DNA of 63,627 bases, the filler included, from Trichosphaerium sp. ATCC 40318 (taxonomy: Eukaryota; Protista; Tubulinea): NCBI GenBank assembly GCA_038496445.1. It is 3 parts of 3 records of this genome, joined end to end, with 100 filler letters (N's around TTAATTAATTAA, not from the genome) between each part and the next. Parts side by side here need not be neighbours in the genome. Positions count along the whole stretch, not along the records: positions 1 to 26,397 come from JALMLS010000134.1; 2 more parts are not named here. One strand, given 5' to 3'. The notes below the pieces were generated by a model, which worked only from the letters and a program-made list of their open reading frames with translations, did not search any database and had not been told where the DNA came from. Shown here piece by piece: positions 1 to 23,149 of this stretch. How positions within the stretch are numbered: position 1 is the first letter of the stretch; the number at the start of each line of letters is the position of its first letter. The position numbers were made by a program, and so were the translations under genes.

Positions 1-310
1 TGCCTCAGGCAATCTTGGTGAAATGCCACTAACAAATTGTGAATAATTGCTTTAACAAACGTATATTACCTAAGTTTGGCCCTACATCTCCTTTTCCGAG
101 CGGAATATACTCAATTTTGGCCTACAAATGTAAGAAAACTGTCACAAGCTGCAAAATTCTTACTCGTTTATCCTTTCCATGATCATCTACCCTCTTCCTC
201 TTCAGTGACATTGCGCCAATGGGTCGTTTTGCGTCCGGACTAAGACCTTTAAAGACCGAGAAAGTGCGAAGTTCAAAAAAATCTCTCGAGTGTCAGGTAA
301 TGCTGTCGTA

Positions 311-2368
311 ATGTTCCATTTGGCAGTAAGAGTCCTATTGTTTGTATTTGCCGCCATTGTGTTAGGCCATAATGGATACAAGGCCGCTGTGGTTGAGTAT
401 AGCCCCATTTTACCCCCATATAATACAACAAGCAAGTTAGATGCCTCTACGGCGATGTTGAAGAACTTGGCACTGTATCAAGTAGTTATTACAAAGCGAT
501 GCCTGTTTACGCGTGTATAGGACTTCGCTTGTACAGCGAAAGCATCTGGAGCTGAAATAATTGTATTTCCAGAGGATGGTCTATATGGACCTCTATTCCC
601 TACCAGGTGAGTTGTAAATAGTCACAATTGCTAATTTAAATACTAGGGACAGCATTTTACCGTTTCTAGAAGCGATACCGGACACTACAGTGACACCATG
701 CACAGAATGGTCAAATGATATTTCAAAACAAGTGCGTAGCTTTTTGTTATCCACCGTGGCGCCAGCGTACCTCATACTCATCGTAAAATCAGCGACATAC
801 TTGAGTACTCATGTCAATCGTCATTTTTTTTTATTTTGGCTTAGCACGTGACTGATTATGATTTATTGCTAATTGTTTTTCCGCTTTTTTGTAGAAATCT
901 TCTCCTACGCTTTTCAAAGCTAGTTGTATAGCTAGAGATGTTGGTATATACATTGTGCTTGATATGGGGGATGTACAATACTGTAGTTCATCAAATGATG
1001 TAAACTGTCCACATGATGGGCGGTATCAGTTTAATACGCAAGTTGCTTTTTCAAACAAAGGCGCTATTCTTCAAAAATACCATAAAACGCACTTATGGTT
1101 TGAACCTCAGTTCGATACACCAGTAAATCAATCACCAAAGTATTTTGATACAGATTTCGGTACGCTTTTTGTGTTGATGAAGAAATTGTTTGTATTTGTT
1201 GTTAACAATTTTTTGGCAAAAGGTGTTCGCTTTGGTATGAGTATATGCTTTGATATAATGTTTGAGCACCCACTGATTGATCTCATAAGTTTGGGTATTA
1301 CAGACTTTACTTACTCAGCGTGGTGGGTCAATACGCCGCCCGCTTTAACAGCAACACAAGTAAGTTGAATATTGCAGCTCAAAGTTACTCAAAAAACTAG
1401 TTTGTTTTGAGTTGTACTTATATGTGGTAGGTCCAAAGCGCTTTTTCATTATTCAGAGATGTCAATCTTCTAGCTTCAGGCTCTGGGCATAGTTGGTAAG
1501 GATCGTACTATGTCAAACTCACAAATTAATGTACTATTTCAGGTTTAATTCTGGATCTGGTATTTATAGCAGTTCGACGGTTTTGCAGACTTTCTTCAAT
1601 CCATCAGGGAAAGGCCAGTCTAAACTCATGATCGCAGAAGTACCAGCAAACAACGTTAAAGTAGTAGAGTACCAGGAAAAAGTGCTTGAGCTCGCTACTG
1701 GTGTCAAGTTGGGTACCGGTTTTACCTTTTAATTGTATTTTCGAAAAGGGAACAAAGAGCTTATTCTTATTTTAGACAAGTTCAAGTCGATAGAAATCAA
1801 TACTTCTGATATCACTGAAGGTTCAGTTACGATAACACAAGGCAACACTACGTGCTCATTAGAGTACAAAGTAAAGTAAGCTCTTCTTGTTTTATCATCC
1901 TTAATAACCTCTACAAAGGCTTCCTGGTGTTACAGATAATCAAAGATACATACTAGCAATACTAGATGGAGAATTAGGCATACTGAAAACAGTAGCTTGC
2001 TCTTTTCTTGTTTGCCAAAAAAAGTATGTACTTTTTTCTTATTTTTTTCAACAAAAGTGGAGTCTTACGTCTTTGATGAATCATTAAGTTATTGACTGTT
2101 TTATTATTGTAGAGGACATGATAGAGATTGTTTTGGTAAAACTAATGAATTGAGTTCATCTGTTGTATTTAGTTCAGTGTCTCTATCAACGACAATGAAT
2201 GTCAAAGGTGTAAATACTTTCTTGCCTGTTGCATCTTCTGATCAATCTCAACTTTTTCCTAATGATGCATTTCAGTTCACACGTGGACCTAACAAATCAT
2301 TTACTTATACTTCTTCCAAAATCGGTAAATCCCTTTTGAACATAGGGATATTCGGCCTTCATTTTTAG
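311..2368 (+). CDS. Vanin/biotinidase (pantetheinase)-family carbon-nitrogen hydrolase, secreted, multi-exon
   Basis: Signal peptide MFHLAVRVLLFVFAAIVLG then YKAAVVEY. Nitrilase triad motifs IVFPEDGL (~560), KYHKTHLW and ICFDIMF are intact; CPHDGRYQFNTQVAFS is typical of vanins. Exons are separated by short GT-AG introns. Confidence 0.9.
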
Positions 2369-2848
2369 AAGCCTTAAACCAAAAAAATGTACTATAAATA
2401 AAAACACGACTACAAATAACCATGCCCAGTGTCCATTTGAAATTAAAGTACTAATAATAATTATGCACAATGAACTTATACCAAATAGCATCTTAGGAGT
2501 GTATACCACAATACTATCAAGTGTTGTCTTTTATTTCAATGAATGCTATTTGACCAGCTGTGACAACATCAAAAGCTGAAATGTAGAAATATCAAATGGC
2601 GCTATTTTCTTGTTGGAACTCTATTACAAACATTCTAAGCTCTTACATGCTAAAGGACTGTATTTGAAGGTAATATATTTTTTTTATCCTGTAGAGGAAC
2701 CCTACCCTTTTGTAATCTAGCGCTTGTATGCGCAATTATACAACGTAAAAGCCACATCAAGCAACAAAACTCAAATATTTGTAACTCGTGACTTTGAAAC
2801 GCGTGTTTTACCCTAATCGTTAAAGATTGTAAGTGTGCGCCTTCTCCA

Positions 2849-5800
2849 ATGGCGGAATTCCCAGTTATTAAACTTGTTGGTAAAGATGAGTTAAAGAAAA
2901 AGCTCATCAAATCATTCGAAGCAAGACACCGCGAGATATATCAACGTAAAAGCATCAGCAAAGAAGGTGCTTTTTATTTTTATTTATTCTGCTCTTTTTT
3001 ATCTTTGGGCGCACGTGGTGCACGTGACTTTAACATTTTGTTAACTAACTGTAGAGACACATTATATACTAGCAGGGAAAACAGAATTGGCGATACTAGT
3101 ACTACACATTTGCTTACAAACCTTTTGAACTTACTATTGATTTAAGAATACAGATGAATCAGATCCAGAAAGACATTTATATTACCCAGTATGTGTAACC
3201 ACGTGGTTTTCTTTATTTTGTTGAAAGCAACAACTAAAACAAACTCTTTCAAGTTGGCTGATGTCTTCATTCTTATTTTCTCTGTTGTTGACCTTGAGAG
3301 CTTACATTCTATAAAAGATAAGGTACAGGCCTTTATTGAAGTGATTGATTTTGGTGCTTATTTAGTAACTATTAGTGGTTGCCAGAACTAAGACAGTTTG
3401 CTCCATACACACCTTATTTGTTGCTTGGCAGTCAAATAGAACTTAGAGATGACTCAAACAACTCACGTTCCGCTAGTCAAAAAGATACAGCCCTGGGAAT
3501 CAGTGGTTCAGAACATATTACTTTTGAACAAGGTATACCTTGTTTATCACATGATAGTTTATTAATCAACGTAAACAAAGGAAGCCTACTTGCTAATGAT
3601 ATCAGTGCCTTTGATTACTGGGAGTGTTCATTGGATATACTATGGACGGAACATATAAGTGAGGTGTTTGATGCTTGTGTGAATTATGTCGGATCAAAGA
3701 GAGTGCGCCACGTATATAAGTGCGGAGTAAAACTACTTATACTCGGACACGGTGGATCAGGTACCAGTACTTGGCGAATGCTATCTCTTTTAACTTCTTA
3801 ACAGGGAAAACGACTTTGCTAAACAAAGTTGAACAACAGCGATCAAAAGGTGTAACAAAATCCACTATATCTTTGAGTACGCGACAATTGAATTTAGTTA
3901 AGAATGTAGATTGTATTGCATATGACTTTGGAGGTCAGATGGAGTATCTAACAAGTCACAAGTCTTTCTTTTCTGACAGAAATTCTATTTATATTGTTAT
4001 GGTATTTCCAACATTTACTGCGTTTGTTGTTCATTGTAACTAACTTGTTAAATGAGATTGATGTGTCAACTAATTTGAGTATACAAACACAACATATTTG
4101 TCATTGGCTTGATGTTCTTGGTTCCAAGGGATTGTTGTATTCAAGGCAAAAACGTCATTTGATAGTTGTCGGAAACAAACTTGATCTTGTTCGAGATCCA
4201 GAAAATACTCTAGATGATATTGTGGCCAACATAAACAAACAATTGAGTGATCATATATCCAAAGCGCCTAAGAATAAGATTGAAGTTACATTCAGCAAGG
4301 ATATGGTCATGTCATCGTTATCTAGTAAGTGTACACTGACTGGTTACTGTTGTAAACTCTACTAATTCAGTTGTTTCAACTATTCAGATAAAAGTGTTGA
4401 TAAGTTCAGGAAAATACTATCAACGTGTATAAGCTCAACAACAACGTGGTCCATTGAATCACAAGTACAATTTACATATCTAATAGAAGAAACAAGCATA
4501 TTTGATTCATCACAAGTATTGTGGACAGTGTACGAGTTTTTCATACCTTTCATTTTTCTCATAATTTTCTTTCCTTTTGTTGCACTTGGTGCTTATAAAC
4601 GCATTCTAGAGATGACATGTTTATATTATTGAAGGGAAAAAAGAGTACTATAATACCATTACTTGAACAGAAGTTCAAGTACAACGTTTATTCTGGGTTT
4701 TCACCTGATGTGTTCCACAACCTAATGGATGGAATCGAGTATTTACATTCTCTGGGAAAGATAACATACAATAAGGTACCACAACAACCCTTTATGGTGT
4801 TTTTTTACACTGTAGAGGTGGTTCGGGCTTATACGGCCACAAAATATCTTACGGGTTAACCGGCTAGCTGTTACACGCCCATGCCTAGCTTGAATAAATT
4901 GATTCCTTCTCTAGGCAACACAAACGGTGTGTTTGAGACCACAAACTATTGCACGTGTCATTGCAAGTTTTATTGGTCCACGAGAACATATACAAAGAGT
5001 ACATGGAAACACAACAAGCTTATTGACACATCGAACGGCAATTGTTAGTCATGCTGTTGCTGTTAAAAAAATCAAAGCAATATCAGAGCTAACAAAACTT
5101 ACTGACAATGAATGTGATGCCATCATGTTGTACATTGAATCTATGAACATATGCTACAAACTAAGCGATGAAGAAGTTGTACGTCTTGTAAACTACTAGA
5201 CAAGTACTAACGTTGATTGTATAGAAAAACTATGGTCAAGAAGGATACTTGTTTTATTGCTTGAGACCTGAAGCTGAAATGATGTACATGCCTCCACCTA
5301 CGGACAAAGACCACAAAGAGAAGTTTATCAGTGATACCAAAGCAAAAGATATAATCATGAGAGTTCATCACACTGAGACAGGTGCTTTTCTTTGCCCTAC
5401 CCACTAGCCTTAACAATGTTAGGTGAAAGAACTACAACCTATCATTGTGTATTCAAAAAGGCTATCAAGAAAGTGAAAGTGAAGCATTCAGAAATAGATT
5501 GTATCACCTTTCACAACACTGTTAGGGTGCTTGCATTCAGTCTTGTAAAGCAAAATAGAAGCATCACCACTGACACATTCAATGAACTTCAAGGAAAGCT
5601 AAAAGGTACTCACAACTCAGCATTCATCGTTGTTTGTATTTAAGTTTATGTTTAAGGATTAAAAGACAACAGATACAAGTTGTTTGCAAACTCTATGATT
5701 ATTAAAGACCCTGATGGAAACGTGATATCCTTGTATTATAAAAATGGCAGTATTGCGATTGTTGTTAGAGGCATTGCACCGGAGATGTGGAAGGTACTTG

Positions 5801-7952
5801 AAAAAATACAGTGCCAAATTGTTAATCTGAGGCAGATAAATCTCTCCAAAGAGCTCAATGAGTTTGGTCTCAAAGATAATCCGATTTGCCCATGTGGCGC
5901 CCAAATGGGCATGATACTGCCGTTGACAAAACGTGAGCTTAAACATGGAAAAAAGTGTGAATTTACAGGGCTTCAAATAAGTCCGTCAGAATTAGTTCAT
6001 GGCTTTCCTTTTCAGAACGATATTCTCAATCCTCTCTGGAGCACCATTAAGTGCGTTTATAAAACAATACTATATATAATAACATACTACTAGATCCTCA
6101 ATGATGGGTAAGTCTAAGAAACTGTGGAAGCAAAAAGGGAACCTGAAATATACCGATCTTACTGACAATGAATTACATCAGGTTTGGTCTTTTTCTTTTT
6201 TTTTTCACTCACTGCTAACAAAGTTAGGACTGCAAAGAAGAATATCTTCGTATTCGTGATATGTTCTACAAGTTTGTAGGAAACGAGAAGAGTTCTTTGT
6301 TTGAGATGACAAAGGCAACTGTGCTCTACAACCCTTCCCTTGAGAAAAAGTTTGGAGAAATGTACAACAAACTTGTAAAAAGAGTGTTAAAGGCTGATAC
6401 TATTTCACCACCTTCTAGTATGTAATATTTGGTCTGCCTAAAATGTTAACACACCTCTCAAGATCCAGGATCAAATACAACCCAAGAGAAGGATAAAAAG
6501 GAATGGCAGCAATGGTATGAAATAACCACGTGGGTTCAGATTGTCGTAGTTTTTTTCACAGAATTGTTAGGATATTATCTCATCTGGAGCAGTACACCAT
6601 GCGTGTATCTGGAAATGAGCAGATCAACCTTATTGCAGGGTTCAATGGTACTTCTGAAGTAAGTCTAACTAGCATTGCAGAATTTTAACTATACTGGTGT
6701 AGGATACGTGCTTCAAGATAGCAGAAAGTAATTTCTTAGAAGCTGCTGAGAAGAAAAAAATGGGCATTACTGTCACTGATCCTGGATATTTTGGTACACG
6801 ACTCTTCTCAATTACTCCTTAAAATTATTTAGGTAATGGTATATACTTCACACAATACCCTTCATATGGTACAATAGTTAGAACGTCCTTTGTGGTAACT
6901 AAATACTTGGTTAGGTTCTTTGTACGCAAAAGCAAATAAAAAACAAGGAAATGTGAAGTGTATGATCATTTCTTGGATACTAATGGGTAACATTACAATG
7001 TTAGAATTATATTCTTACAGGTTATGCTAGGTAGACCATATCCTGTTACAGAGGATCCTTTCAAAGGTGCCTCAACGTCACTTCTTGGTAAAGGTTTAGT
7101 TGTATGTTTTTACCTTGTTTGTGTACCTTCTAAATGGTGCTGTAGGCGGGATATGACTCACACTATGTTGTTACAAAGAGTACAATTTCCAAGGATATTC
7201 AAGCACCTTGCAAGCCTGGCGAAGTGCCAGACGCTGACGAGATAGTAATTTTCAATAAAGATCAGGTACAACACCAGCTTGTACAACAGAGTAATCATTT
7301 ATCACTTTAACCTAGATTTTACCTCGATACCTTGTGTACTACAAGCGTGTTGATACAACTTCAAGCAATAAAAACTCTGGGTTGGTATTTGCTCAAATGA
7401 AGAGCAAAAATGTTGAGTGGCGTGATGCTGATAAACTTGTTCTTTGGGTTGACAACAACTTATCTTTTCAAAACAAGGAATTAGTAAAGGTCATCGAGAA
7501 ATCAAGCAAACATAAAGTCAAAGTATGTTCTTCAAAAGTCTTTTAGTGTCACGTGTATTAACGTCTAATGTTGATTTTGTTTAGGTGATAAGCATGACAT
7601 CATCTGTAGAACTAAAGTCGTGGCTTGATACAATTGCTCCTCATTTGAAGGGACGGAACTTTATGATTGTAACAAACAGATATCGAAAAAATGATGGTGG
7701 TGATAAAGCAGCACATGACCTCATCAAGTAATTTTGTTTTGAACGGATCAGTCCTTAGATTTAACTCACGTGTTTGTCAATAGGTTAGTACGTGGACATA
7801 AAGGCTGGAAGAGTATTCCTGTTGTTGTGTTTTGTGAAAACATTGCAGATGCAAGGAGTCTTAAAAAGATGAAACATACACAAGTTACTGACAGGTCACC
7901 TGACGTTTTAACATGGTGTTCTTCGCTAAAGAAAAACCCTTTCAAAAAATAA
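2849..7952 (+). CDS. Multidomain protein: degenerate Rho-like GTPase + Roc GTPase + COR + PARP-like ADP-ribosyltransferase + receiver-like domain
   Basis: Hand-spliced exons give Rho-like YYP-LADVFILIFSVVD..KWLPELRQFAPYTPYLLLGSQIELRD; Roc LGHGGSGKTT (split by the intron at 3761), YDFGGQMEY, IVVGNKLD; COR-like IEYLHSLGKI/VCLRPQ; ART-like FNGT..DPGYFGNGIYFT..GYDSHYV..DEIVIF..QILPRYLVYY; C-terminal VLWVDNN..IVTNRYR..IPVVVFC. Some internal exon boundaries are uncertain. Confidence 0.8.
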
Positions 7953-8870: not shown

Positions 8871-10004
8871 ATGAACAACAAGAAAGTACACGATATTGAA
8901 GCATACATACCATACAACAACCTTCAAAACGGAACATGGGTATCACGATGGAAAGGAAAGAACAGCTTCACGGAAACACACCTAGTTAAAACCAAGAAGA
9001 CGTTTACCGGCAAAAGAAGCGATTTGCCACAATTTCTCACGAATTTGAGGTTGCTCACAGAAGATGCCGAATTGAGTGAGAAAGGGTTCGTTCTATTTCT
9101 CGAACAAGCGATTGGAAGCAACATCACCACGCTTATCAACGATTGCGAAAGGAAGGCACGCGACAAGATCGAACTATTGGTCAACAACCTCTTTCCCGAA
9201 GATATCATGCGTACGTTGCACATAGAATTTATTAGTGCGACACAGAACGAAAATGAAAGCATTTTGAAATGGTCTATTCGAGTTTCAGAAAAAGGGCGTA
9301 TGGTTAACGCTACCAAGAAGGAGATCGCTAGAAGGTTTCGAAATGGCTTTCGACAAGAATTGAAACTCAAAGTCGACCTCGAGTACGCCAACTACACCGA
9401 TGAAGAGAAGGACGCACTCACCATCAGCGAAATCACGGTAAAAGCTCAAAAATATGTGAAACGCGACAACAGTATCATGGAAGGCGAAGCAGAGGCTATG
9501 AACTATACCTCGAACAAAAGGAAGTACGAAGAACCACCAAGACGTAACAACCAAGTACGAGAGAACAATTACGAGCGAGAAAAACGTTTTGGCACCGGCA
9601 GATTCGACCCAAGGAAGCGTAACCGACGTACCAACACGAGAGTCTATTACGAGGAGTCTGGCGTCAAAGTTGTTGTCTCTGGCGATAACAAGTATCGATT
9701 CACGGCAAAAGGAGAACCGATATGTAGCGGATGTGGACGCTCTCGACACATTTGGCGTAAGTGTTACAACAACCCAGACCGCGAAGAAGATGCACCATCG
9801 CAGTACTACCCAGAACCAGGAAAGCGCCAGAACAAGAACAACGGTGCCAGTAAAGAAGATGTAAACGTCGTCGAAGAAGAAGAAGATGACGACAACGTGT
9901 TTGCCAATACAGATATTAATTTTGATTATGATCGTCTTTGTTTGTTGAGTGAGTGTTTGCGTTTGCGTTGTTGTGTTTTGTGTTTACGTGTGTGTAGAAC
10001 CTGA
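8871..10004 (+). CDS. gag: Gag of element 1
   Basis: 377-aa ORF right after the PBS, with capsid-like QNENESILKW motif and CCHC knuckle CSGCGRSRHIWRKC. Confidence 0.92.
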   Translation: MNNKKVHDIEAYIPYNNLQNGTWVSRWKGKNSFTETHLVKTKKTFTGKRSDLPQFLTNLRLLTEDAELSEKGFVLFLEQAIGSNITTLINDCERKARDKIELLVNNLFPEDIMRTLHIEFISATQNENESILKWSIRVSEKGRMVNATKKEIARRFRNGFRQELKLKVDLEYANYTDEEKDALTISEITVKAQKYVKRDNSIMEGEAEAMNYTSNKRKYEEPPRRNNQVRENNYEREKRFGTGRFDPRKRNRRTNTRVYYEESGVKVVVSGDNKYRFTAKGEPICSGCGRSRHIWRKCYNNPDREEDAPSQYYPEPGKRQNKNNGASKEDVNVVEEEEDDDNVFANTDINFDYDRLCLLSECLRLRCCVLCLRVCRT

Positions 10005-13000
10005 GGATGAAAAGTGTTTACTGACTAGTGCAGAGTCTGCTGCCGTTAAGGAAAATAGATTTATTATCGATGCTTGTTGTGCCCTAGAGTTTGACCAGAG
10101 TAATGCCAATTTTATGAAGCTGTGCGGTTATGAATTTGGTTGCAAGGATGCATGCAACAGTACTACAAACCATGAATACCGATATAGTATACTGAAGTCC
10201 ACGTGCGTCATCAAAGATACGAAAATGAATGCTGTGTTTGATACAGGTGCCTCGGTTTCGCTGATTGATTTGAAAATGATACGCAAATTGGGTTTATTGG
10301 GATCAGTTACAAGACAGTACATGCGACCACTATACTCAGCCGACAATCAACGCATCAAGACATACGGAGTCATCTCGCTGAAGGTGAAGGTCGGTGGTAT
10401 ATTTACAATTGCAGAATTACAAGTTATCAAAGACTTTAAATACGACATTCTCTTGGGTATGAATTACATTACAGACGCTGGTTGTGTCATCGACATTGGT
10501 AACAAAAACATCACGCCACAAGGAGGATGGCCAGTACCAATACAAACAGTGCGACGACGTATCAACCCACAACAAGTGCACGTGCTCACAACAAATGCGA
10601 TAAAATTAGCACCATACAGCGAGACAATATTCATGGCTAAAGTACCACAAACTGTCAGTGGTACATGTGGTATGATTACAGCACATAAGAGTTGCATCAC
10701 ACCAGGTACATACCTCATACGGAGCGTCAGCAAAGTCAGGAAAGGACTTGCACAAGTACAAATATTAAACGCGACGAACAGAAGGATCAGTTTGAAGCCA
10801 CGAATGGATATAGGATCATTCAGCAGTATACGAGAAGAAGACATTGTGAATAACATAGACGAGAAAAGAGAAACAGTGTTAGAAAGAGTTAATGAGATGC
10901 TAAAGAAGAAACGCAGCGACGAAGAGATCGCACACATATACAAATTGTTTAAGATACAGAGTAAGAAGCTCACGAAGCAACAGAAGTTAATGGTAGCCGT
11001 ACTACATCACGAATACAAAGACCAATTCGACGAAAAGTTAGATCCGAAGAACCACGTCACAGCCGTCAGACACAAGATAGAAACGGACAAGAACAAAGAG
11101 CCGATAGCAACGCCATACAGATACATGACACCACTCAAAGCCGATGTTATTAGGAAGGAGATCAGGAAGCTACTAGAACAAGGAATAATAAGAGAATCAA
11201 AATCACCATGGTCGGCGTCAGTAGTATTAGTCAAGAAATCAGATGGAAAATGGCGCTTTTGTATAGATTTTAGAGAACTGAACAAGATTACGAAGAAAAC
11301 AGTCCACCCAATACCACGCATCAACGAAGTACTGGATGCGACAGCGCTATCAATTTTATTCTCGACATACGATTTGACGAGTGGATATTTTCAGATCGAC
11401 AATGAAGAAGAAGATATTGAAAAGACGGCTTTCTCCACGATAGACGGACACTACGAGTTTGTGAAAATGCCAATGGGCCTCAAGAATTCAATGGCCACAT
11501 TCCAGAAGTTAATGAACTTGACGATGTCTGGACTATTATGGAAGATATGTTTATGTTACGTTGATGATATTATAATATTCTCAAGATCATTTCAAGATCA
11601 TATCATCAACACTGCGTTAGTGTTAGAAAGAGTTAAGCAACAAGGCCTCAAGTTAAAAGCCAGTAAGTCGAAGATATTTGAAAATCAAGTACAATTCCTA
11701 GGATACAGGATATCAGCAGAAGGAGTATTGCCAAAAGAGTCAAGTATTGAAGAAATTAGAAGAGCACCAGAACCAACGAAGTTTGAAGAGTTATTCAGAG
11801 TATTAGACGTCACCAATCATTACCGAAGATTTGTTAAAGGATACGCACATAAAATACAACCGTTCCAGGGTCTACGGAAGAAGGACGCAGTATGGGAATG
11901 GACCAAAGAACACAGCGAAGCATACAAAGAACTTAAATATGCATTTACGAACCCACCAGTATTGAAACATCCTGACTTCAGCAAGCCATTCGAACTACAC
12001 GTAGACGCGTCAGGATATGCATGTGGAGCTGTTTTATGCCAAAGAGACGAACTTAAAAGAGAACGAGTAATATCGTACTTCTCAAAGAACTTCACAGAAG
12101 GACAAAAGAAATACTCCACCACCGAAAGAGAACTACTGGGGATATGCGAAGCGTTAAAGAACTATAAAGGCTATTTAGCGTATACGAAATTCACGCTAGT
12201 AGTATTTACGGATCACGAACCACTCACGATGATGTCACGAATCAACACGGTTAAGAATGTTATAGCTAGATTATTATTAAGTATACAGCAGTTCGAATAC
12301 GAATTAGAATATAAGAAAGGAAAATTACACATAGTACCAGACGCATTATCGAGAACTCCATTCGCCACAAAGGAGACAGTCAACGCGATAGATATGTATA
12401 AGAAGAAGTTACATGTACAAGGACACAACGATTCAGGAATAGACTGGAAAACATTACAAGACAACGACGCAACAACACAAGTATTTATACAATTTTTACG
12501 AGAAGGGAAGATTAGCAGAGCAATATTAAAGTCAAGAGGATTTATAGAATCCACATTTTACGCACAAGCGAGAGACCTAAGAATTGATGACAAAGGCATA
12601 CTATACAGGAAGGATCCAACAAAAGCAGAAGATGAGATATTCCAAATATACGTACCCAACATCGTTAAACTGAAGAGAGCCATATACAAACAAGCACACG
12701 ACGCACCGTTCTCAGGACACTTAGGCTTTATAAAAACATACGACAGACTACGAGAAAGATTTTATTGGCCTAGATTATACGCGGATACAAAAGAATGGTG
12801 TAGATCATGTCCGTCATGTTTAAGAACGAAGACGCCAAGATTAAAGAAAGCAGGCAAGATGGGAGGAAAGTTCGGAGCTAGTTACCCGTTTGAGCTAGTC
12901 ACCATGGACATAGTAGGACCATTGAACAGAACAGGAGCAGGAAACAAATACCTATTAGTCATTAATTGCAACTTTACGAAATGGGTAGAAGCGTTTGCCA

Positions 13001-14253
13001 TGAAGAACCAAGAAGCGACAACAATTGCGAAGATATTTGTCAACGAATGGTGTTTCAGATATGGAATACCTAACACGATATTAACCGACCAAGGTAAGAA
13101 TTTAACAGGAGAGATTATGAAGCAAGTGTACGACATATTACACATCAACAAAAAGAGAACGACAGCATACCATGCACAAACGGATGGCCAGACGGAACGA
13201 TTCAACCACACATTAATAGAGATGATACGACACTTTGTAGACGATGATCAAGATGATTGGGACATTTGGATCGAACCATGTTTATTTGCGTATAGAACAG
13301 CGATACACTCAACCACGAAATATGAGCCGTACAGATTACTATTTGGCAGGAAACCAAGAATACCACTAGATGTCATAGCAGGAAACGGTGGATTACTAAA
13401 GAACAAATACAACATGAGCGACTGGGCTGAAACACTAGCACACAGACTGAAATCAGTACATGAGATTGCGAAGAGAAACACGTTAGCAGAGAAAAGGAAA
13501 CAAGCAGAATACTACAACACAGGTAGAAGAACAGTAGAATACAAAGTAGGACAGAAAGTATGGTTATACGTACCACATATTAAAGAAGGGCAAAGAAAGA
13601 AGTTGACACAAAAATGGCAAGGACCGTTCGAAATATTAGAGAAGATCAGCGACATTACTATAAGACTAGACATACCAGAACATAGGAAGTTATCAGAAGT
13701 AGTACACGTAGAGAGACTGAAACCACACATAGATTCATACTTGAGGCCACAAGAAGACATAGAAATAGATACGAGGGATATATACAAGCAACAAAGAGAT
13801 AAATATAAAGAGATAACTGATCCAGGAGAGGATGACGATACCGAATATAAAGAGAATAACGAATTAGAATCAACAAGAGCAGTAGCGAAGAAGATAGAGG
13901 AATCTACAATCAATAGCCCAATGGAAATAGAGGGAACGACAACAAAAAGGAAAGGAATGAGAAGAAGAGGAACAAAGATGACCAGAACGACACATTTAAA
14001 GAAGTTATTAGAATACATATACGGAGTATCAAAGAACCTGTCAAACGATAAACTAGCCAGCATGTTGAAGGAGTTAGTAGGAAAAGGATCGAGATACATA
14101 AGAAGTAGTACCAAGTGCGAGGAGCTAGAAAGCGAGATTAAATATAGCAAAAGAAACGGTAAAGAAGAGCTACGGAAATGGCTAGCGGAATTCATAGCAA
14201 ACTTTGAGAAAACCTTAACGGAAGAATTACTATTAATGATACAAGAATGGTGA
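9998..14253 (+). CDS. pol: Pol of element 1 (protease, RT, RNase H, integrase, C-terminal extension)
   Basis: FDTGAS; YVDD; DASG/TERELL/TDH/DALSR; HHCC (AHDAPFSGH..CPSC); MDIVGP/TDQG/GQTERFN; GPF. The ORF track starts at GTG 9949, in the +1 frame relative to gag. Confidence 0.96.
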
Positions 14254-14397: not shown

Positions 14398-16942
14398 TAT
14401 GGTAGCGAAAGGTGTAAGCTACTCCACAACTGTACGCATTTTTCCGAGCTATTGAAAATTATTTTACGAAATCACGTGATCTTATGTTTTTTTCAATTTC
14501 TTATCAACACTAACAAGTCTTGCAATAGAAAGGTATTCACGAGCTACTAGAGTACCTCACGCAATATCAAAAAGATCTGCATAATCCTAAAGGTGATTGG
14601 GACGTTTGCACACTTGCTGGTACATATCACAGATGATTAAAAGGGCCTCATGCTTGAATAGGAAGTAAGGATGGTATAGGAAAGATATTGAAGATTTTAA
14701 CTGAAACAGGAGACACAATACTATGCTCAGAGGTTCTATACTAGTTAAGTTCTTTTATCACTTGTATTTAAAAGTAGTTACCTAATCAATCAAATAAATA
14801 GTGGAGCAAAGGTTACTCGGGAACAATGTGTTTGGCATGGTATACCAATAGATGAGGATGGTATTAAACCGGATTTGTTAAGGAAGACACTAGATGATTG
14901 GCCTGAAGATAGCAAAAAACCAAAGGTTTACCAGAATACGCTTCGGAGGTTATCTTACTTTCGATTTTAGGTTCTTTATGTAGTACCTACAGGACAAAAT
15001 CCAACAGGAAGTATTTTACCTTACGAAAGACGTAAAGAATTATTGAGTATAGCTTCAGATCATAACCTAATAATAATTGAGGATGACCCATACTGGTTCG
15101 TAGAATTTTCTTAGTTTGTTGGACAAATGAAACAACGTTTTAGGCATGTCTGTCTCGGATGTGAGAAGCCAGTTGAAAGCTTATTATCAATGGATACAGA
15201 AGGAAGAGTGCTAAGACTAGACTCTTTTAGTAAAATCATAGCACCAGGGCTTCGTCTTGGGTGGGTTACAGGGCCAAAGTATTTGGTTGATAAAATAGAA
15301 TTATTGAACCAAGGAGACATTATTCATCCGTCTGGTATGTAGAAATACTTCAAGTTTTAAACATACTTTTATCTGGATTCTGTCCAAGAGCGTAAACTTA
15401 CCAGTAATCACAAACACCTTTTTGTTAAATACGCCATTGGTATTTCACACTCTTGTTCAGAAACTACAATATCGCTCATAGCATTTGTTGACTACAATGA
15501 AATACAGCAATTCCTCATTAATTGTTATTATAAGGTGTCAGTCAAGCGATTGTGCTATCAATACTAAAACATTGGGGAAAGGAAGGCATAGAACAACATT
15601 CAAAAAGTATAAGAACAATATACACTTCAAAGAGGGATGCTTTGATTTCTTCATGTGACAAGCACCTCAAAGGATTAGCAACATGGGTTATTCCTAAAGG
15701 AGGATTTTTCCTATGGCTAAGATTGACTGATGTAGAAGACACTGAGGAGCTTGTACGCAAAGAAGTAGTAGCATCAAAGGTACATGTTCAACATTTAAAA
15801 TCTTCTCATTTCACGCTTACGCATACACTTGCTTTTAGGTATTGCTCAGGTGGGGATCACCTTACACAGCATCGGGGGACAAATCATCGTGTGTTCGGAT
15901 AGCGTATTCTACAGCATCTAAAGAGGTACCAAACAGTTTGTTTTTGTAATTGTATTTTTGGTTGTTTCTTTTTATCACGTGATATAACTATTTAGGATAT
16001 GGAAGAAGCAATAAAAAGACTTGCGACTATTCTTACAAAAAGAAATAATAAGTTGAAGTAAAATGTTTGTGGATATAAAAATATGGTCCAGAGTGTAAAA
16101 CATAATTTCCTGGTATTGTCAGCAGTTTATAATGCTTGAGTGGAAATTGCGTACAGCAGTAATTGGCGTCTTATCGTAATCATCCTGCAAGTGGCCATCA
16201 TTGGCCTAAATAGTACAAAAGTAGAGCCTACAACATGTTGCACAAAACAGTCCTCATTTGAAACTTAGTGTCCGTGGCAGTCAAGTTAATGCCAACAAGT
16301 GACTTTTTACAGAACTTGCAGGTTTTTGTCAGACCTAGACAATCCGACGGGATCTGACAGTTGACAGAACTTACATGTGATTCAGGTGCAGTACAAAAAA
16401 AACAAATCTGTAACAAAGCAAAAAACCGTAACATGATAGCTATTTACTACATTCTGTTTATAGCCATTTTCGGCTGAAGCGTATGATGAGAAGGTAGCGT
16501 TACAAAATGTAATTGCTTCTGTTTTTCTTGCTCAGAATGGTTTCTTCCAAGCAGTACAAACTTACAGTTCGTTTTGAAAGTGTATAGTTAACCAACAAAC
16601 GTGTAACTTCCAAGGAGTGTAGTACTGTTAACGGTACGACTCAACTCGATTTTTTGAGAAAAAACGGTGGGACACAATGTAACAGAGATGTACCTCAATG
16701 TTACGTCGTAAAAGGAGATGAAGACGACTAGCAGCGTGATTAGAGTAAGTCCACAGGATTTTACTGTATTTGACCGGTATAAAAGCGTTACTATCACCAT
16801 AAAGCAACTAGTTCATAGTACGATTACGTACCTTAAGTGACAAATGCCAGTTTCAATGGTACATGGCGGAAACACAAATATGTAGAACTTGTCAAAAAAA
16901 AAGTCAAAAATTCGGCACTAATTATCTTATATTATGCCATAG

Positions 16943-20155: not shown

Positions 20156-21398
20156 TCAAGCAATAAGTTCTCCAATCCACTCACCCTTAGAATAAAGTGC
20201 ACGCTCTGTCTTACCACCACAAATATTCCACCTCTCAAATACGCCATGTTTCTGTCCGTACACATAAGTGCCACGTTCTGACATTTGTGTAGTATCTTTA
20301 TACCAACGTATTCTTATTCCGTTCGTTCTTTGGTGTTAATCTCACGTGACACAATCATTCCTGTATTCTTACTAAACTGTTCTTGTAATCCGTCTAACTT
20401 ACCATCTTTGTACGTTTTCCTAGATATTATTTTTCCAGTTTGCTCGCTAAACACTTCACATAATCCATGAAGATTTCCGTCACAATACTCTGTACTGGAT
20501 ACCAACAAAGCTGTACTATCAATTTGCAAATCTTTGCCGAACTTAGTGTTTCTAGTAAGCCATTAAACTTTCCATCTTTGTATTGTATACAATCGCTTAA
20601 TTTCCATGATCCTTTGTATGATAGTGTCTTTCCGTGAGGAGTTATTTCACGTGTTATAGGAGAGATAATATTCTCAGATATCTCATGTGTATTTAGAACC
20701 TCATTGTTTCTTATAACAAAAACTCTTTTATGTTGCCTAATGCAACATGAAACGCCATTGTTTTGTTGGTAAACACAACCATGCCAAGACTTCGGAATCT
20801 TGGGTAGTGACGTATCAAAAAACTCGTCTTGCGTGCCATGGAACGCTTGGGTATAAGCTAGATAGTCCAAAGATGTTAAAGAACGAACCAATAGTACAAA
20901 TCCATCGTCAGTGTATGTAACTTCCGTTGATTGATTTCTCCAAGTACCAACTTTTTTACCTTTGTTGTAATGGCCCGAAGTGTGTAATAGACCTGTATCT
21001 ATATAGCTTGAAGTGTACAATCCATGTTGCATACCTCCCACAAAGTGGCAAGTATCAACACATAGTTCTTGGTCTTCCTGGCGCCTTGTATTCCATTCAA
21101 AGGTGCCTCGCTTTCGTAAGCCAGTGTCATACCTAGAAGCTACAGCAAACTCATAATTGATAACCGAGAACTGAGTCTTTAAGACTTTGTCTTCCTTAGC
21201 AATATCATATAAGCACCGGAGCACTTCCGGAGGTAGATATTCGACAATGCTTCTGAGGTAGAGGATAAGAATTGGTACATTAAAAAAATGATAACAAGCA
21301 TACTCATCACTTTCTCTGTGTCGCTCAGCAACTTTTTGATTGATCTTGCTTGATACGAATCTATTAATAATATCTTCTGCTGGTTCTTCGGAAGACAT
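20156..21398 (-). pseudogene. F-box-like + MORN-variant repeat protein with two frameshifts
   Basis: YLPPEVLRCLY F-box-like motif and repeats such as GHYNKGKKVGTW, YKDGKLDGLQEQF, GTYVYGQKHGVFERW. The frame changes near 20555 and 20330 without splice signals (decay or assembly error). Confidence 0.7.
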
Positions 21399-23149
21399 GT
21401 TATAGAGTCTCTTAGTTTTTATTCTTCTTTTTTTTCTTTTTTGTTTTCGTTTTTTAGTCGGTTTACATTGTCGGACACGTGTGGAGTTGGATGTAAAGTA
21501 AGGCGATAAAACACTTGACAAAACCCGATATATAATGTAAAAGTATCGTTGTAGTACGTAAATTACGTTGGTAAACATTGCTGAGGTGCGTTGATGGAGT
21601 TTCAATATAAAAAAGGTGCATTCAATGACTTTCATATGAAACAATATTCGCTGAAGTTTACATTGATTTTCTATGCAAGCCATAGCTTAGCACATATAAA
21701 TTGAACAGAGTCGGCCTTTTGCTCTAACGTATTTACATAACTAAATTAGGTACAAGTGAAACGTTAAAGGACACAAAAAAGATGAGAATACGTGTAAGAG
21801 ACGTGGCCTTAGTTGTAGGGTAATAGTGTAATTTATTGTAGTGACATACGTTGTGATCATTCACACTACATTTGTGTATTTCGTCAAAGTTCACAATGAT
21901 TATTTTCGTCGAAATTAGTATGAGAGAAAATAATAAAATAAATGATGTTAAAAAAAAGGTCCAACACGTGGTCGATGTAGGAGGTTGTTTCAAAAAATTT
22001 CAACGGAACACTTACTCTAAGAACATAAGCGTAGACAGAAGAATTAGTCAAAAATGAAAAGTCCCAAATCAGGTAAGCGAAACGAGGCCACTGCGCAAAC
22101 AACGTGTGGAGCGTAACCTTTCGACGTTCAGCCTGATATGTTACGGAACCTAGTTTTAGGTTTGAGAGGTACACGCTTACAACCGTACATGAATTAGCTA
22201 CAAAAGAGCACGTGATAACCAATACAAGCAGAGAATTTGACCATTAACGACACGTTGATTTTGTAAACTCAAATGTAGCGAGTTGTATTGCTTAAAACAT
22301 CATTCAAGTCAACGCATTCTGTCCGTATATACACGTTGGCGTTGTACTAGATCGATAGGGAGTTCAAACAATGTGTTGTCTCTTAAAACTATCAGCTAGT
22401 CGTCTTTGTTACTTGTATACGCGTAAACCATCTATGTTTGGCTAACTGAGGCTTTTGGAGTGCGTATGGCGCACTTAAAGAGGCCAGCGACAAAAATCTA
22501 TCTGCTTTGGGATTTTTTAAAGTCAGCATCCAAAAAGCTTCGGGAATCTTTAGTTAGAAGGGACATGGCATACAATTACACCTACAGAGACATTTTTTAG
22601 CCATGCCAACGTGTTTGTGTAGAAAATAACACAAGAGCACGTGAAACGCCTTTAGAAAACACGATCGACGCGACAGCCACAAGCTTGTTTGATCTTCACT
22701 GGCAGAGTGTATGTATAATCTTTCTTATGTTTGATTAAACAGAGTTAACTGCAGTGCAGTGATTCTCTATTGTCTTATTCTAGCGAACCAACGAGATTGA
22801 GTATTTTTCACTCGTATCAATCTCCGTGTGGACTGGCTATATATCACAAGGCCCCGAATAAGAAAGTTCGTTAAGTTTCTGTTTCAATGATCAATCACTT
22901 ATAAATTAGCTCCGTTAACTTCGTTGCGTTGATAAACACATTGTTCAAGGGCTGTTTAAGGTGATTTTTTACTTCCAAGGTGCCGTGCCCTATCGTGAAC
23001 CCTCTAATAATACAAGTACGTTTGTTTTGAGACTATCAATGATAGGTTAATTAAAAAACAATGCGCAAGAATTCAATGGTGAACTTTTAAATTCACATTA
23101 TTGGGTTTGACTAAAGTGTAGTTTTTTTGATTATTTTTTGTTGTCCCAA

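Follow-up and report, generated by a model that had tools for sequence, protein, structure and literature searches.

A gene from an expanded family of Trichosphaerium sp. that joins Roc GTPase and PARP-type domains between a degenerate Rho-like head and a pseudo-receiver tail

Introduction

Roc-type GTPases drive kinases in proteins such as LRRK2 and DAPK1, which stand with the Dictyostelium Roco kinases and the bacterial Roc-COR/AP-GTPase proteins among the Roco proteins. In the AP-GTPase-COR conflict proteins of bacteria, the C-terminal effector domain comes in at least 24 alternatives, and variable sensor and effector modules surround a GTPase core that stays the same among numerous paralogues per genome (PMC8195603). 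Here we describe a gene with a related layout at positions 2849–7952 (+ strand) of a 63,627-nt stretch of DNA (the window, filler letters included) from the marine amoeba Trichosphaerium sp. ATCC 40318 (Amoebozoa; assembly GCA_038496445.1). As in the Roco proteins, Roc is followed in this gene and its family by a long conserved stretch and an output domain, and the many paralogues vary the modules around an unchanging GTPase core as the bacterial proteins do. Their output, however, is a PARP-type domain with a pseudo-receiver instead of a kinase, death domain, TIR, caspase or similar domain, and their head is a pseudo-Rho domain or a set of MORN repeats instead of leucine-rich repeats (LRRs) or ankyrin repeats.

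The draft genome of Trichosphaerium sp. spans 70.87 Mbp with a GC content of 37.69%, mean intron and exon lengths of 75 bp and 154 bp, and 1,581 gene models of giant-virus origin; the paper that describes it does not mention PARP, GTPase or Roc (PMC10521059). A full-text literature search on Roco proteins with PARP or ADP-ribosyltransferase domains found no description of this architecture; unpublished database entries may exist. We regard the architecture as a fresh variation on a known theme, that of a Roc switch with a variable effector.

Results

A gene of 26 short exons

The assembly that we examined comprises 70.28 Mb in 642 contigs, and the window gene lies on contig C403 (26.4 kb; JALMLS010000134.1, positions 1–26,397 of the window). 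GC content per kb of this contig is 33–45%. The interval 2849–7952 lacks a long open reading frame (ORF), and its + strand is divided among numerous short ones, as is usual where short introns interrupt a eukaryotic gene. Direct reading of the DNA, combined with tblastx against the paralogous loci L010 (contig C186), L011 (C37) and L012 (C399), yielded a model of 26 exons with a coding sequence of 3,588 nt, specifying 1,195 aa plus a stop codon. Exons 1–6 lie at 2849–2966, 3154–3188, 3254–3322, 3376–3532, 3581–3760 and 3805–4001; exons 7–12 at 4057–4324, 4388–4527, 4635–4775, 4915–5178, 5225–5381 and 5423–5605; exons 13–18 at 5657–5793, 5836–6050, 6094–6181, 6228–6417, 6463–6514 and 6571–6658; exons 19–24 at 6703–6793, 6833–6868, 6915–6986, 7031–7101, 7146–7265 and 7316–7522; and exons 25–26 at 7585–7727 and 7784–7952, all on the + strand. 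All 25 introns (39–187 nt) are of the GT-AG type and the phase of every exon is consistent. The stop codon at 7950–7952 is common to the window gene and the three paralogues, and colinear conservation reaches it. Three boundaries are uncertain by a few codons, namely those at the beginning of exon 9, at the end of exon 10 and between exons 14 and 15. The 42-nt intron at 5794–5835 is in frame in the window gene, so that its retention is possible; its counterpart in the paralogues must be spliced, because the flanking exons there are in different frames. The model locates all features of the original prediction at their stated coordinates on the + strand over these 26 short exons. It supports a single protein of several domains, which starts with a degenerate Rho-like head, continues with Roc and a PARP-type domain and closes with a pseudo-receiver tail.

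Evidence for a continuous gene under purifying selection

At the junction between the region that follows Roc, which stands at the position of COR (the COR-position region), and the PARP-type domain, exons 14, 15 and 16 are separated by introns of only 43 and 46 nt with continuous phase, which leaves no room for a gene boundary. A copy of the whole gene that is 97% identical, introns included, lies on the 203-kb contig C111 (L009, 104000–113500). This copy is most likely the other haplotype of the window gene, and C403, at 26 kb, is probably a haplotig that was not collapsed. Between C403 and C111, the exons diverge by 1.5% without any indel, the introns by 2.8% and the flanks by 4.2%, and the 17 gap columns all fall in introns. 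The coding differences comprise 38 synonymous and 15 non-synonymous changes, with a single non-synonymous change in the PARP exons. This pattern supports the exon model and argues for purifying selection.

Homologues were found in two other genomes. The contig L047 (JGI metagenome 3300048575, 1–7603; 58% GC, very few introns) carries the same Roc/COR-position/PARP/receiver gene, in which an uninterrupted ORF of 399 aa (1134–2333) contains, in a single frame, the counterparts of exons 10/11, 13, the Cys cluster of exon 14, and exons 15 and 16. This ORF is flanked by one that matches Pfam Roc and by one with the remainder of the PARP-type domain and the receiver-like domain; the contig is incomplete at its 5' end. 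The second homologue, L046 (Logan SRR10663366; 38% GC), has its Roc, COR-position, PARP and receiver modules in the same order, colinear with the window gene. The homologues in these two genomes show that the architecture did not arise from an isolated error of assembly.

The C-terminal half of the model was compared with a spliced transcript. The MMETSP0405 transcriptome of Trichosphaerium sp. ATCC 40318 contains P0004, a protein that joins a PARP-type domain to a receiver-like domain and whose parts are 88–100% identical to exons of the paralogue L022 on contig C3. Window exons 18–22 align to P0004 residues 1–28, 29–54, 56–66, 71–88 and 90–110, and exons 23–26 to residues 114–152, 153–206, 210–255 and 258–300, so that exons 18–26 tile the transcript end to end without overlap. 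The claim that the locus is a single gene is sustained by the continuous phases, by the ORF across the junction in L047 and by colinearity in 28 loci of this genome and in the two other genomes, and we infer a single mRNA for the window gene.

An intact Roc domain precedes a conserved region at the COR position

The queries for domain searches were single exons, long ORFs that occur naturally in paralogues and homologues, and proteins from databases. Exon-by-exon Pfam scans of 20 open frames of the window gene detected Roc only, and a whole-library HMMER search with an exon 13–14 piece returned three spurious repeat proteins and nothing else. The Roc domain (3715–4324, +) extends from the end of exon 5 to exon 7 and is matched by Pfam Roc on the frame 3720–4040 (E = 4.2e-7, 30.7 bits; cut-off 27). 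Its G1 (GHGGSGKT, split across the exon 5/6 junction), G3 (DFGGQ) and G4 (NKLD) motifs are complete, in agreement with the prediction of an intact Roc. Pfam Roc scores 43.4 bits on the first ORF of L047 (ORF1), whose best PDB matches are the LRRK2 Roc domain, ahead of Rab proteins; LRRK2 Roc is the closest solved relative of the family Roc.

The COR-position region (4388–5793, +; exons 8–13) is assigned purely by its position. Together with exons 14–15 it accounts for ~480 aa that are conserved across the family, and the region itself is conserved in all 28 inspected loci. Pfam COR did not match the window exons or the natural ORFs L016:3935–4528, L047 ORF1 and L047 ORF2, and PDB sequence and profile searches with a COR-position ORF and an exon-10 profile gave no match. 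A word search with the post-Roc part of L047 ORF1 returned only itself. A genome scan with Pfam COR-A gave 48 matches at 43 candidate places, none of them at loci of this family, which shows that canonical Roco genes exist in the genome. The COR-like region of the original prediction is therefore present as a conserved stretch at the COR position, but no profile recovers COR in it. The same applies to the label 'Roco': its Roc part stands, by Pfam and by motifs, but membership rests on COR and is unproven, and the cautious designation is 'Roc protein with a COR-position domain'. LRRs and a kinase had been declared absent, and neither was found in the window gene.

The PARP-type domain carries Asn at the catalytic His position

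The PARP-type ADP-ribosyltransferase (ART) domain (6228–7345, +) comprises exons 16–23 and the first 10 codons of exon 24. Pfam gave no match on the window PARP exons alone, and the predicted domain was borne out through its relatives. A word search with the family profile A7 retrieved 27 proteins, including P0004, P0005 and P0013 (E = 5.6e-23 to 1e-9), and a Pfam PARP rescan of ten of these relatives placed eight above the gathering score, with 29 to 55 bits (P0013, 55; P0005, 46; P0004, 38). P0004 was modelled with AlphaFold from an alignment with 17 homologues (mean pLDDT 73). Foldseek gave 89 matches to the model with E ≤ 0.001, and the top-listed matches were all PARP1/PARP2 catalytic domains (best E = 5.3e-5, prob 1.00). 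A profile of the P0004 homologue alignment (A9) had 71 matches in the PDB; all 60 that were listed belong to the PARP family, with PARP2 in the lead (E = 8.9e-6), followed by PARP12, ZAP, PARP4, PARP1 and the tankyrases. The printed alignment lays the family motifs WHGS, FGxGIYF and DEIVVF on WHGS, FGKGIYF and YNEYIVY of PARP2, which correspond to the H-Y-E triad, and window exons 18–24 tile P0004 residues 1–206 colinearly.

Other searches were less productive. Comparisons by phmmer and by profile with PDB sequences returned nothing for the N-half of the PARP domain, the C-terminal ORF or the C-half of L011, the ESM Atlas returned nothing for the N-half, and hhalign gave no significant alignment between the family N-half and the canonical PARP ORFs of this genome. 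For the C-half, the hhalign E-value moved from 3e-5 to 0.002 after intron read-through columns had been set as inserts, and the result was not relied on. Among short exon hidden Markov models searched against a local decoy database, only that of the Tyr-motif exon matched canonical PARP (E = 0.015). A genome scan with Pfam PARP gave at least 86 candidate places, none at family loci. Because the Pfam PARP and COR-A places avoid the family loci, PARP and canonical Roco genes appear to have been expanded independently in this amoeba. Two canonical PARP ORFs of the genome, at C138:28285–28866 and C17:203323–203844, are free of introns.

The triad of the window gene reads N-Y-E, not H-Y-E. The Tyr codon (6844–6846, +) lies in GNGIYF (GKGIYF in PARP2) and the Glu codon (7239–7241, +) in DADEIVIF (YNEYIVY in PARP2), and an Asn codon (6644–6646, +) occupies the catalytic His position in GFNGTSE, where the family consensus is G[FL]HGT[ST]. 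This residue is Asn in the haplotig on C111 as well; among the three closest paralogues, it is Ser in L010 and L012 and His in L011; His is kept in every inspected copy of the MORN-headed type and of the type found on contig C3. Among the inspected loci, departures from His are confined to the Rho-type sub-clade. Two metagenome relatives also lack it, with Thr in P0006 and Trp in P0026. The Tyr is present in 26 of the 27 inspected copies, the exception being L034 (GTYF), and the Glu motif [DN]E[IV][IV][VI]F in every inspected copy whose match reaches it. Since the NAD-binding His of H-Y-E is replaced by Asn, the description of the window gene product as NAD+-consuming is doubtful. In diphtheria toxin, Asn is reportedly the one substitution of the equivalent His that keeps much activity, which a paper search did not confirm. 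Human PARP9 and PARP13 lack the triad His and are inactive or partner-dependent.

With the PARP/ARTD proteins (PARP1/2, PARP12, ZAP/PARP13, PARP4 and tankyrase), the family domain shares the ART fold and the positions of the H-Y-E motifs, and it keeps HG[ST], GxGIYF and E-[IV]-V-x-F followed by PxYL. It differs from them in having no helical regulatory, WWE, macro or zinc-finger context, in an insertion of 35–40 aa that precedes the His strand, and in its place between a GTPase switch on the N-terminal side and a receiver fold on the C-terminal side. The window gene differs further in the exchange of His for Asn.

The tail resembles a receiver with Asn at the inferred acceptor position

The remainder of exon 24 and exons 25–26 encode a receiver-like tail (7400–7949, +), for which modelling predicts a (βα)5 CheY-like fold. 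In both AlphaFold 2 models, the Asn of IVTNRYRK (7675–7677, +) stands at the C-terminal end of strand 3, the inferred position of the phospho-acceptor Asp, an equivalence read off the strand positions of the models and not off a residue alignment. The motif I[IV]TN[RST]YR..DG is invariant in the paralogues, and I[IV][ST]N is found in full-length metagenome homologues; the position expected for the conserved Lys after strand 5 reads Asp. Pfam Response_reg did not match the tail. The predicted fold bears out the earlier description of a receiver-like domain, and the Asn at the end of strand 3 fits its account of Asn in place of the phospho-Asp. The tail departs from response-regulator receivers in its invariant Asn at the inferred acceptor and Asp at the expected Lys, and in being a eukaryotic domain that lies C-terminal to a PARP-type domain and has no histidine kinase context.

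The head is a Rho-derived pseudo-GTPase

Exons 1–4 and the first part of exon 5 (2849–3690, +) encode a head related to the Rho family. A PDB sequence search with exon 4, WLPELRQFAPYTPYLLLGSQIELRDD, gave TC10 as the best match (E = 1e-6), followed by Cdc42 and Rac; there were 144 matches, and all 60 that were listed are Rho-family GTPases. Exon 1, MAEFPVIKLVGKDELKKKLIKSF, contains IKLVGKDELKKK at the place of the Rho GxxxxGK[ST] motif, so that G1 reads GKDELKKK. The G3 region, DESDPERHLYYP, lacks DxxG, and G4 reads SQIE and not [NT]KxD. Exon 2 encodes ESDPERHLYYP, where Rac has DTAGQEDYDRLRPLSYP; compared with Rac, the head is without ~17 residues of switch I and β2–β3. The first exon of L011 keeps a fuller Rho N-terminus, with a P-loop that is also degenerate, and it matches Pfam Ras at 20.9 bits (E = 2.9e-4; cut-off 21.6). 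Because the matches are Rho-specific and G1, G3 and G4 are eroded, we consider the head to be a Rho-derived pseudo-GTPase; the damage to G1 and G4 recognised in the original prediction extends to G3. The head resembles Rho-family GTPases in the Rho-specific sequence around α3–β5 (WLPEL...LLLGSQIELRDD; ...ECS) and differs from them in its degenerate G1, G3 and G4 and its shortened switch I and β2–β3. As the domain is N-terminal to Roc, it has no C-terminal CAAX.

A Cys cluster precedes the PARP-type domain

Exons 14–15 (5836–6181, +) encode a linker with the small Cys cluster that had been noted earlier, CPC...HGKKC, itself at 5887–5958. The exon 14 cluster, CPCGAQMG...HGKKC, is kept in L010–L012 and has the counterpart CPIC...C...CPAGH in L047, and it is absent or diverged in most copies of the MORN-headed type. 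The Cys-cluster segment of the window (query residues 74–100) also had eleven matches to P0001, a database entry of 1,146 aa in which Pfam recognises no domain and which may be a repeat protein with a similar Cys motif or a chance match.

The family occupies about 45 places with exchangeable heads

The COR-position, PARP and tail exons each have 43–46 matches in the genome with constant spacing, corresponding to about 45 places; the counts are minimum values, with haplotig duplicates included. From Roc to the tail, colinearity holds in each of the 28 loci that were examined. Contig C3 holds at least 10 copies, seven of them inside ~130 kb, in both orientations. The head of most copies consists of MORN repeats (Pfam MORN, E = 2e-29), and degenerate Rho/Ras-like heads are found in the window gene, in L010–L012, and in L020 and L024. 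Since most members bear MORN repeats in place of Rho, the head is a swappable module. No sequence relatives were found among named model-organism proteins.

Two loci show further features. L027 (C354:19000–28999) contains two family members head to head, and its + strand copy, in which frames are shifted and exons are missing, appears to be a paralogue in decay. Directly upstream of the Rho-type paralogue on C186 lies an ORF of 514 aa (L010:7282–8823, −) with an F-box-like start and LRR-like repeats (IHTIDLRGCRQITDK), which may be a gene of its own or an additional head exon.

Neighbouring sequences in the window

The window gene is adjoined downstream by a Ty3/gypsy-type long terminal repeat (LTR) retrotransposon (8871–14253, +) in a strongly A-skewed region. 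It has an ORF of 377 aa, followed by an uninterrupted 1,434-aa pol with protease, reverse transcriptase, RNase H, integrase and Tf2-type SH3 domains (Pfam matches to E = 2.5e-33). A carbon-nitrogen hydrolase fragment lies at 955–1368 (+; Pfam E = 2.5e-8), a weak aminotransferase-like fragment at 15552–15902 (+), and a 418-aa ORF with no Pfam match at 20427–21683 (−).

Discussion

On balance, we think it fairly likely that the locus is an intact, selectively constrained five-module gene of a lineage-expanded family in which the state of Roc switches the PARP-type domain, with an output that is probably altered in this member. From the N- to the C-terminus, the protein would consist of an eroded Rho pseudo-GTPase unable to bind nucleotide, Roc, the COR-position region with the Cys cluster, the PARP-type domain and a CheY-fold pseudo-receiver, and across the family the Roc/COR-position/PARP/receiver core would be constant and the head swappable. 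The nucleotide state of Roc, transmitted via the COR-position region, would switch the C-terminal PARP-type domain; such gating through the middle region is inferred by analogy with the Roco and AP-GTPase-COR proteins. The pseudo-receiver could serve as a phosphorylation-independent regulatory or dimerisation module, and the head could supply localisation or sensing. The replacement of the NAD-binding His by Asn means that the output of the window gene is probably weakened or altered, and its protein may be a regulatory or sensor partner of H-Y-E paralogues. For the family as a whole, the simplest interpretation has a Roc switch driving an ADP-ribosyltransferase output, and it is plausible that ADP-ribosylation is switched by GTP in this way. 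The shape of the family, in a host with heavy giant-virus traffic, would favour a role in conflict with viruses or bacteria.

Several points weigh against this reading. The triad of the window gene is N-Y-E, and a transcript spanning Roc to PARP was not found by a word search with P0004 or by a whole-library search. No COR was detected by the Pfam or PDB searches, and Pfam COR-A, which detects other Roco genes in the genome, does not see the post-Roc region of the family; a Roco-style dimer switch would thus be an analogy. The PARP and receiver folds were assigned on a paralogue and on homologues and not on the window protein itself, and GTP binding and NAD+ use are predicted properties. The suggested role in defence takes its whole basis from expansion, tandem clusters and head swapping.

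The alternatives concern, in turn, the integrity of the gene, its output and its role. It is very improbable that the interval holds two adjacent genes, one Rho-Roc and one PARP-receiver, or a decaying pseudogene, with the long model an artefact of exons called by eye. The missing junction-spanning transcript, the detection of Roc alone in Pfam scans of single exons and the uncertainty of some exon boundaries would fit such an arrangement, but the phase is unbroken through exons 14–16 across introns of 43 and 46 nt, L047 has a single ORF across the junction, 28 loci and two other genomes are colinear, and the haplotypes differ by indels in introns only and by 38 synonymous to 15 non-synonymous changes. 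It is more conceivable, if still unlikely in our view, that the window gene and its Ser-bearing paralogues have a pseudo-enzymatic PARP domain, in a protein that acts as a non-catalytic scaffold or as a reader of ADP-ribose or NAD+ paired with H-Y-E members, or in a manner free of ADP-ribosylation. The His that aligns with the catalytic His of PARP2 is exchanged for Asn in both haplotypes and for Ser in L010 and L012; purifying selection nevertheless acts on the gene, with one non-synonymous haplotype difference in the PARP exons. The retention of the Tyr, the Glu and all other family motifs speaks against a pseudo-enzyme, and, in view of the diphtheria toxin substitution, NAD+ binding may persist with Asn.

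A role in ordinary cell-biological signalling at the membrane or cytoskeleton, as in the Dictyostelium Roco kinases, with heads that target membranes or the cortex and no part in defence, is to be judged about as unlikely as the pseudo-enzyme. MORN repeats are linked to membranes and the Rho family is cytoskeletal, and MORN repeats head most copies. Pathogen-sensing repeats (LRR, WD40, TPR) were not found in the window gene by Pfam scans, and the many canonical COR-A and PARP matches in the genome indicate that expansions are common there. Against ordinary signalling stand the ~45 places, the tandem and inverted clusters on C3, head swapping, decaying copies (L027) and catalytic erosion in a sub-clade, a pattern of expansion, swapping and decay that is typical of conflict gene families, and the lack of sequence relatives among named model-organism proteins. 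A bolder scheme, to which we give little credence, would make the family a class of amoebal innate-immune receptors in which Roc arms the PARP domain, the eroded Rho head of this sub-clade is an integrated decoy that signals interference by Rho-modifying effectors of pathogens or giant viruses, and sensors with Asn/Ser-Tyr-Glu triads activate H-Y-E executioners by heterodimerisation; the decoy role of the pseudo-Rho head in particular is speculation.

If the proposed Roc-switched PARP reading is true, the wiring of Roc to a PARP-type domain and a pseudo-receiver would constitute a new output for Roc and a new mode of PARP regulation. The H-Y-E, N-Y-E and S-Y-E members offer a natural series on how PARP domains become pseudo-enzymes. 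Because the family is large, clustered and head-swapping and resides in a giant-virus-rich genome, it is a candidate immune-like gene family of a protist.

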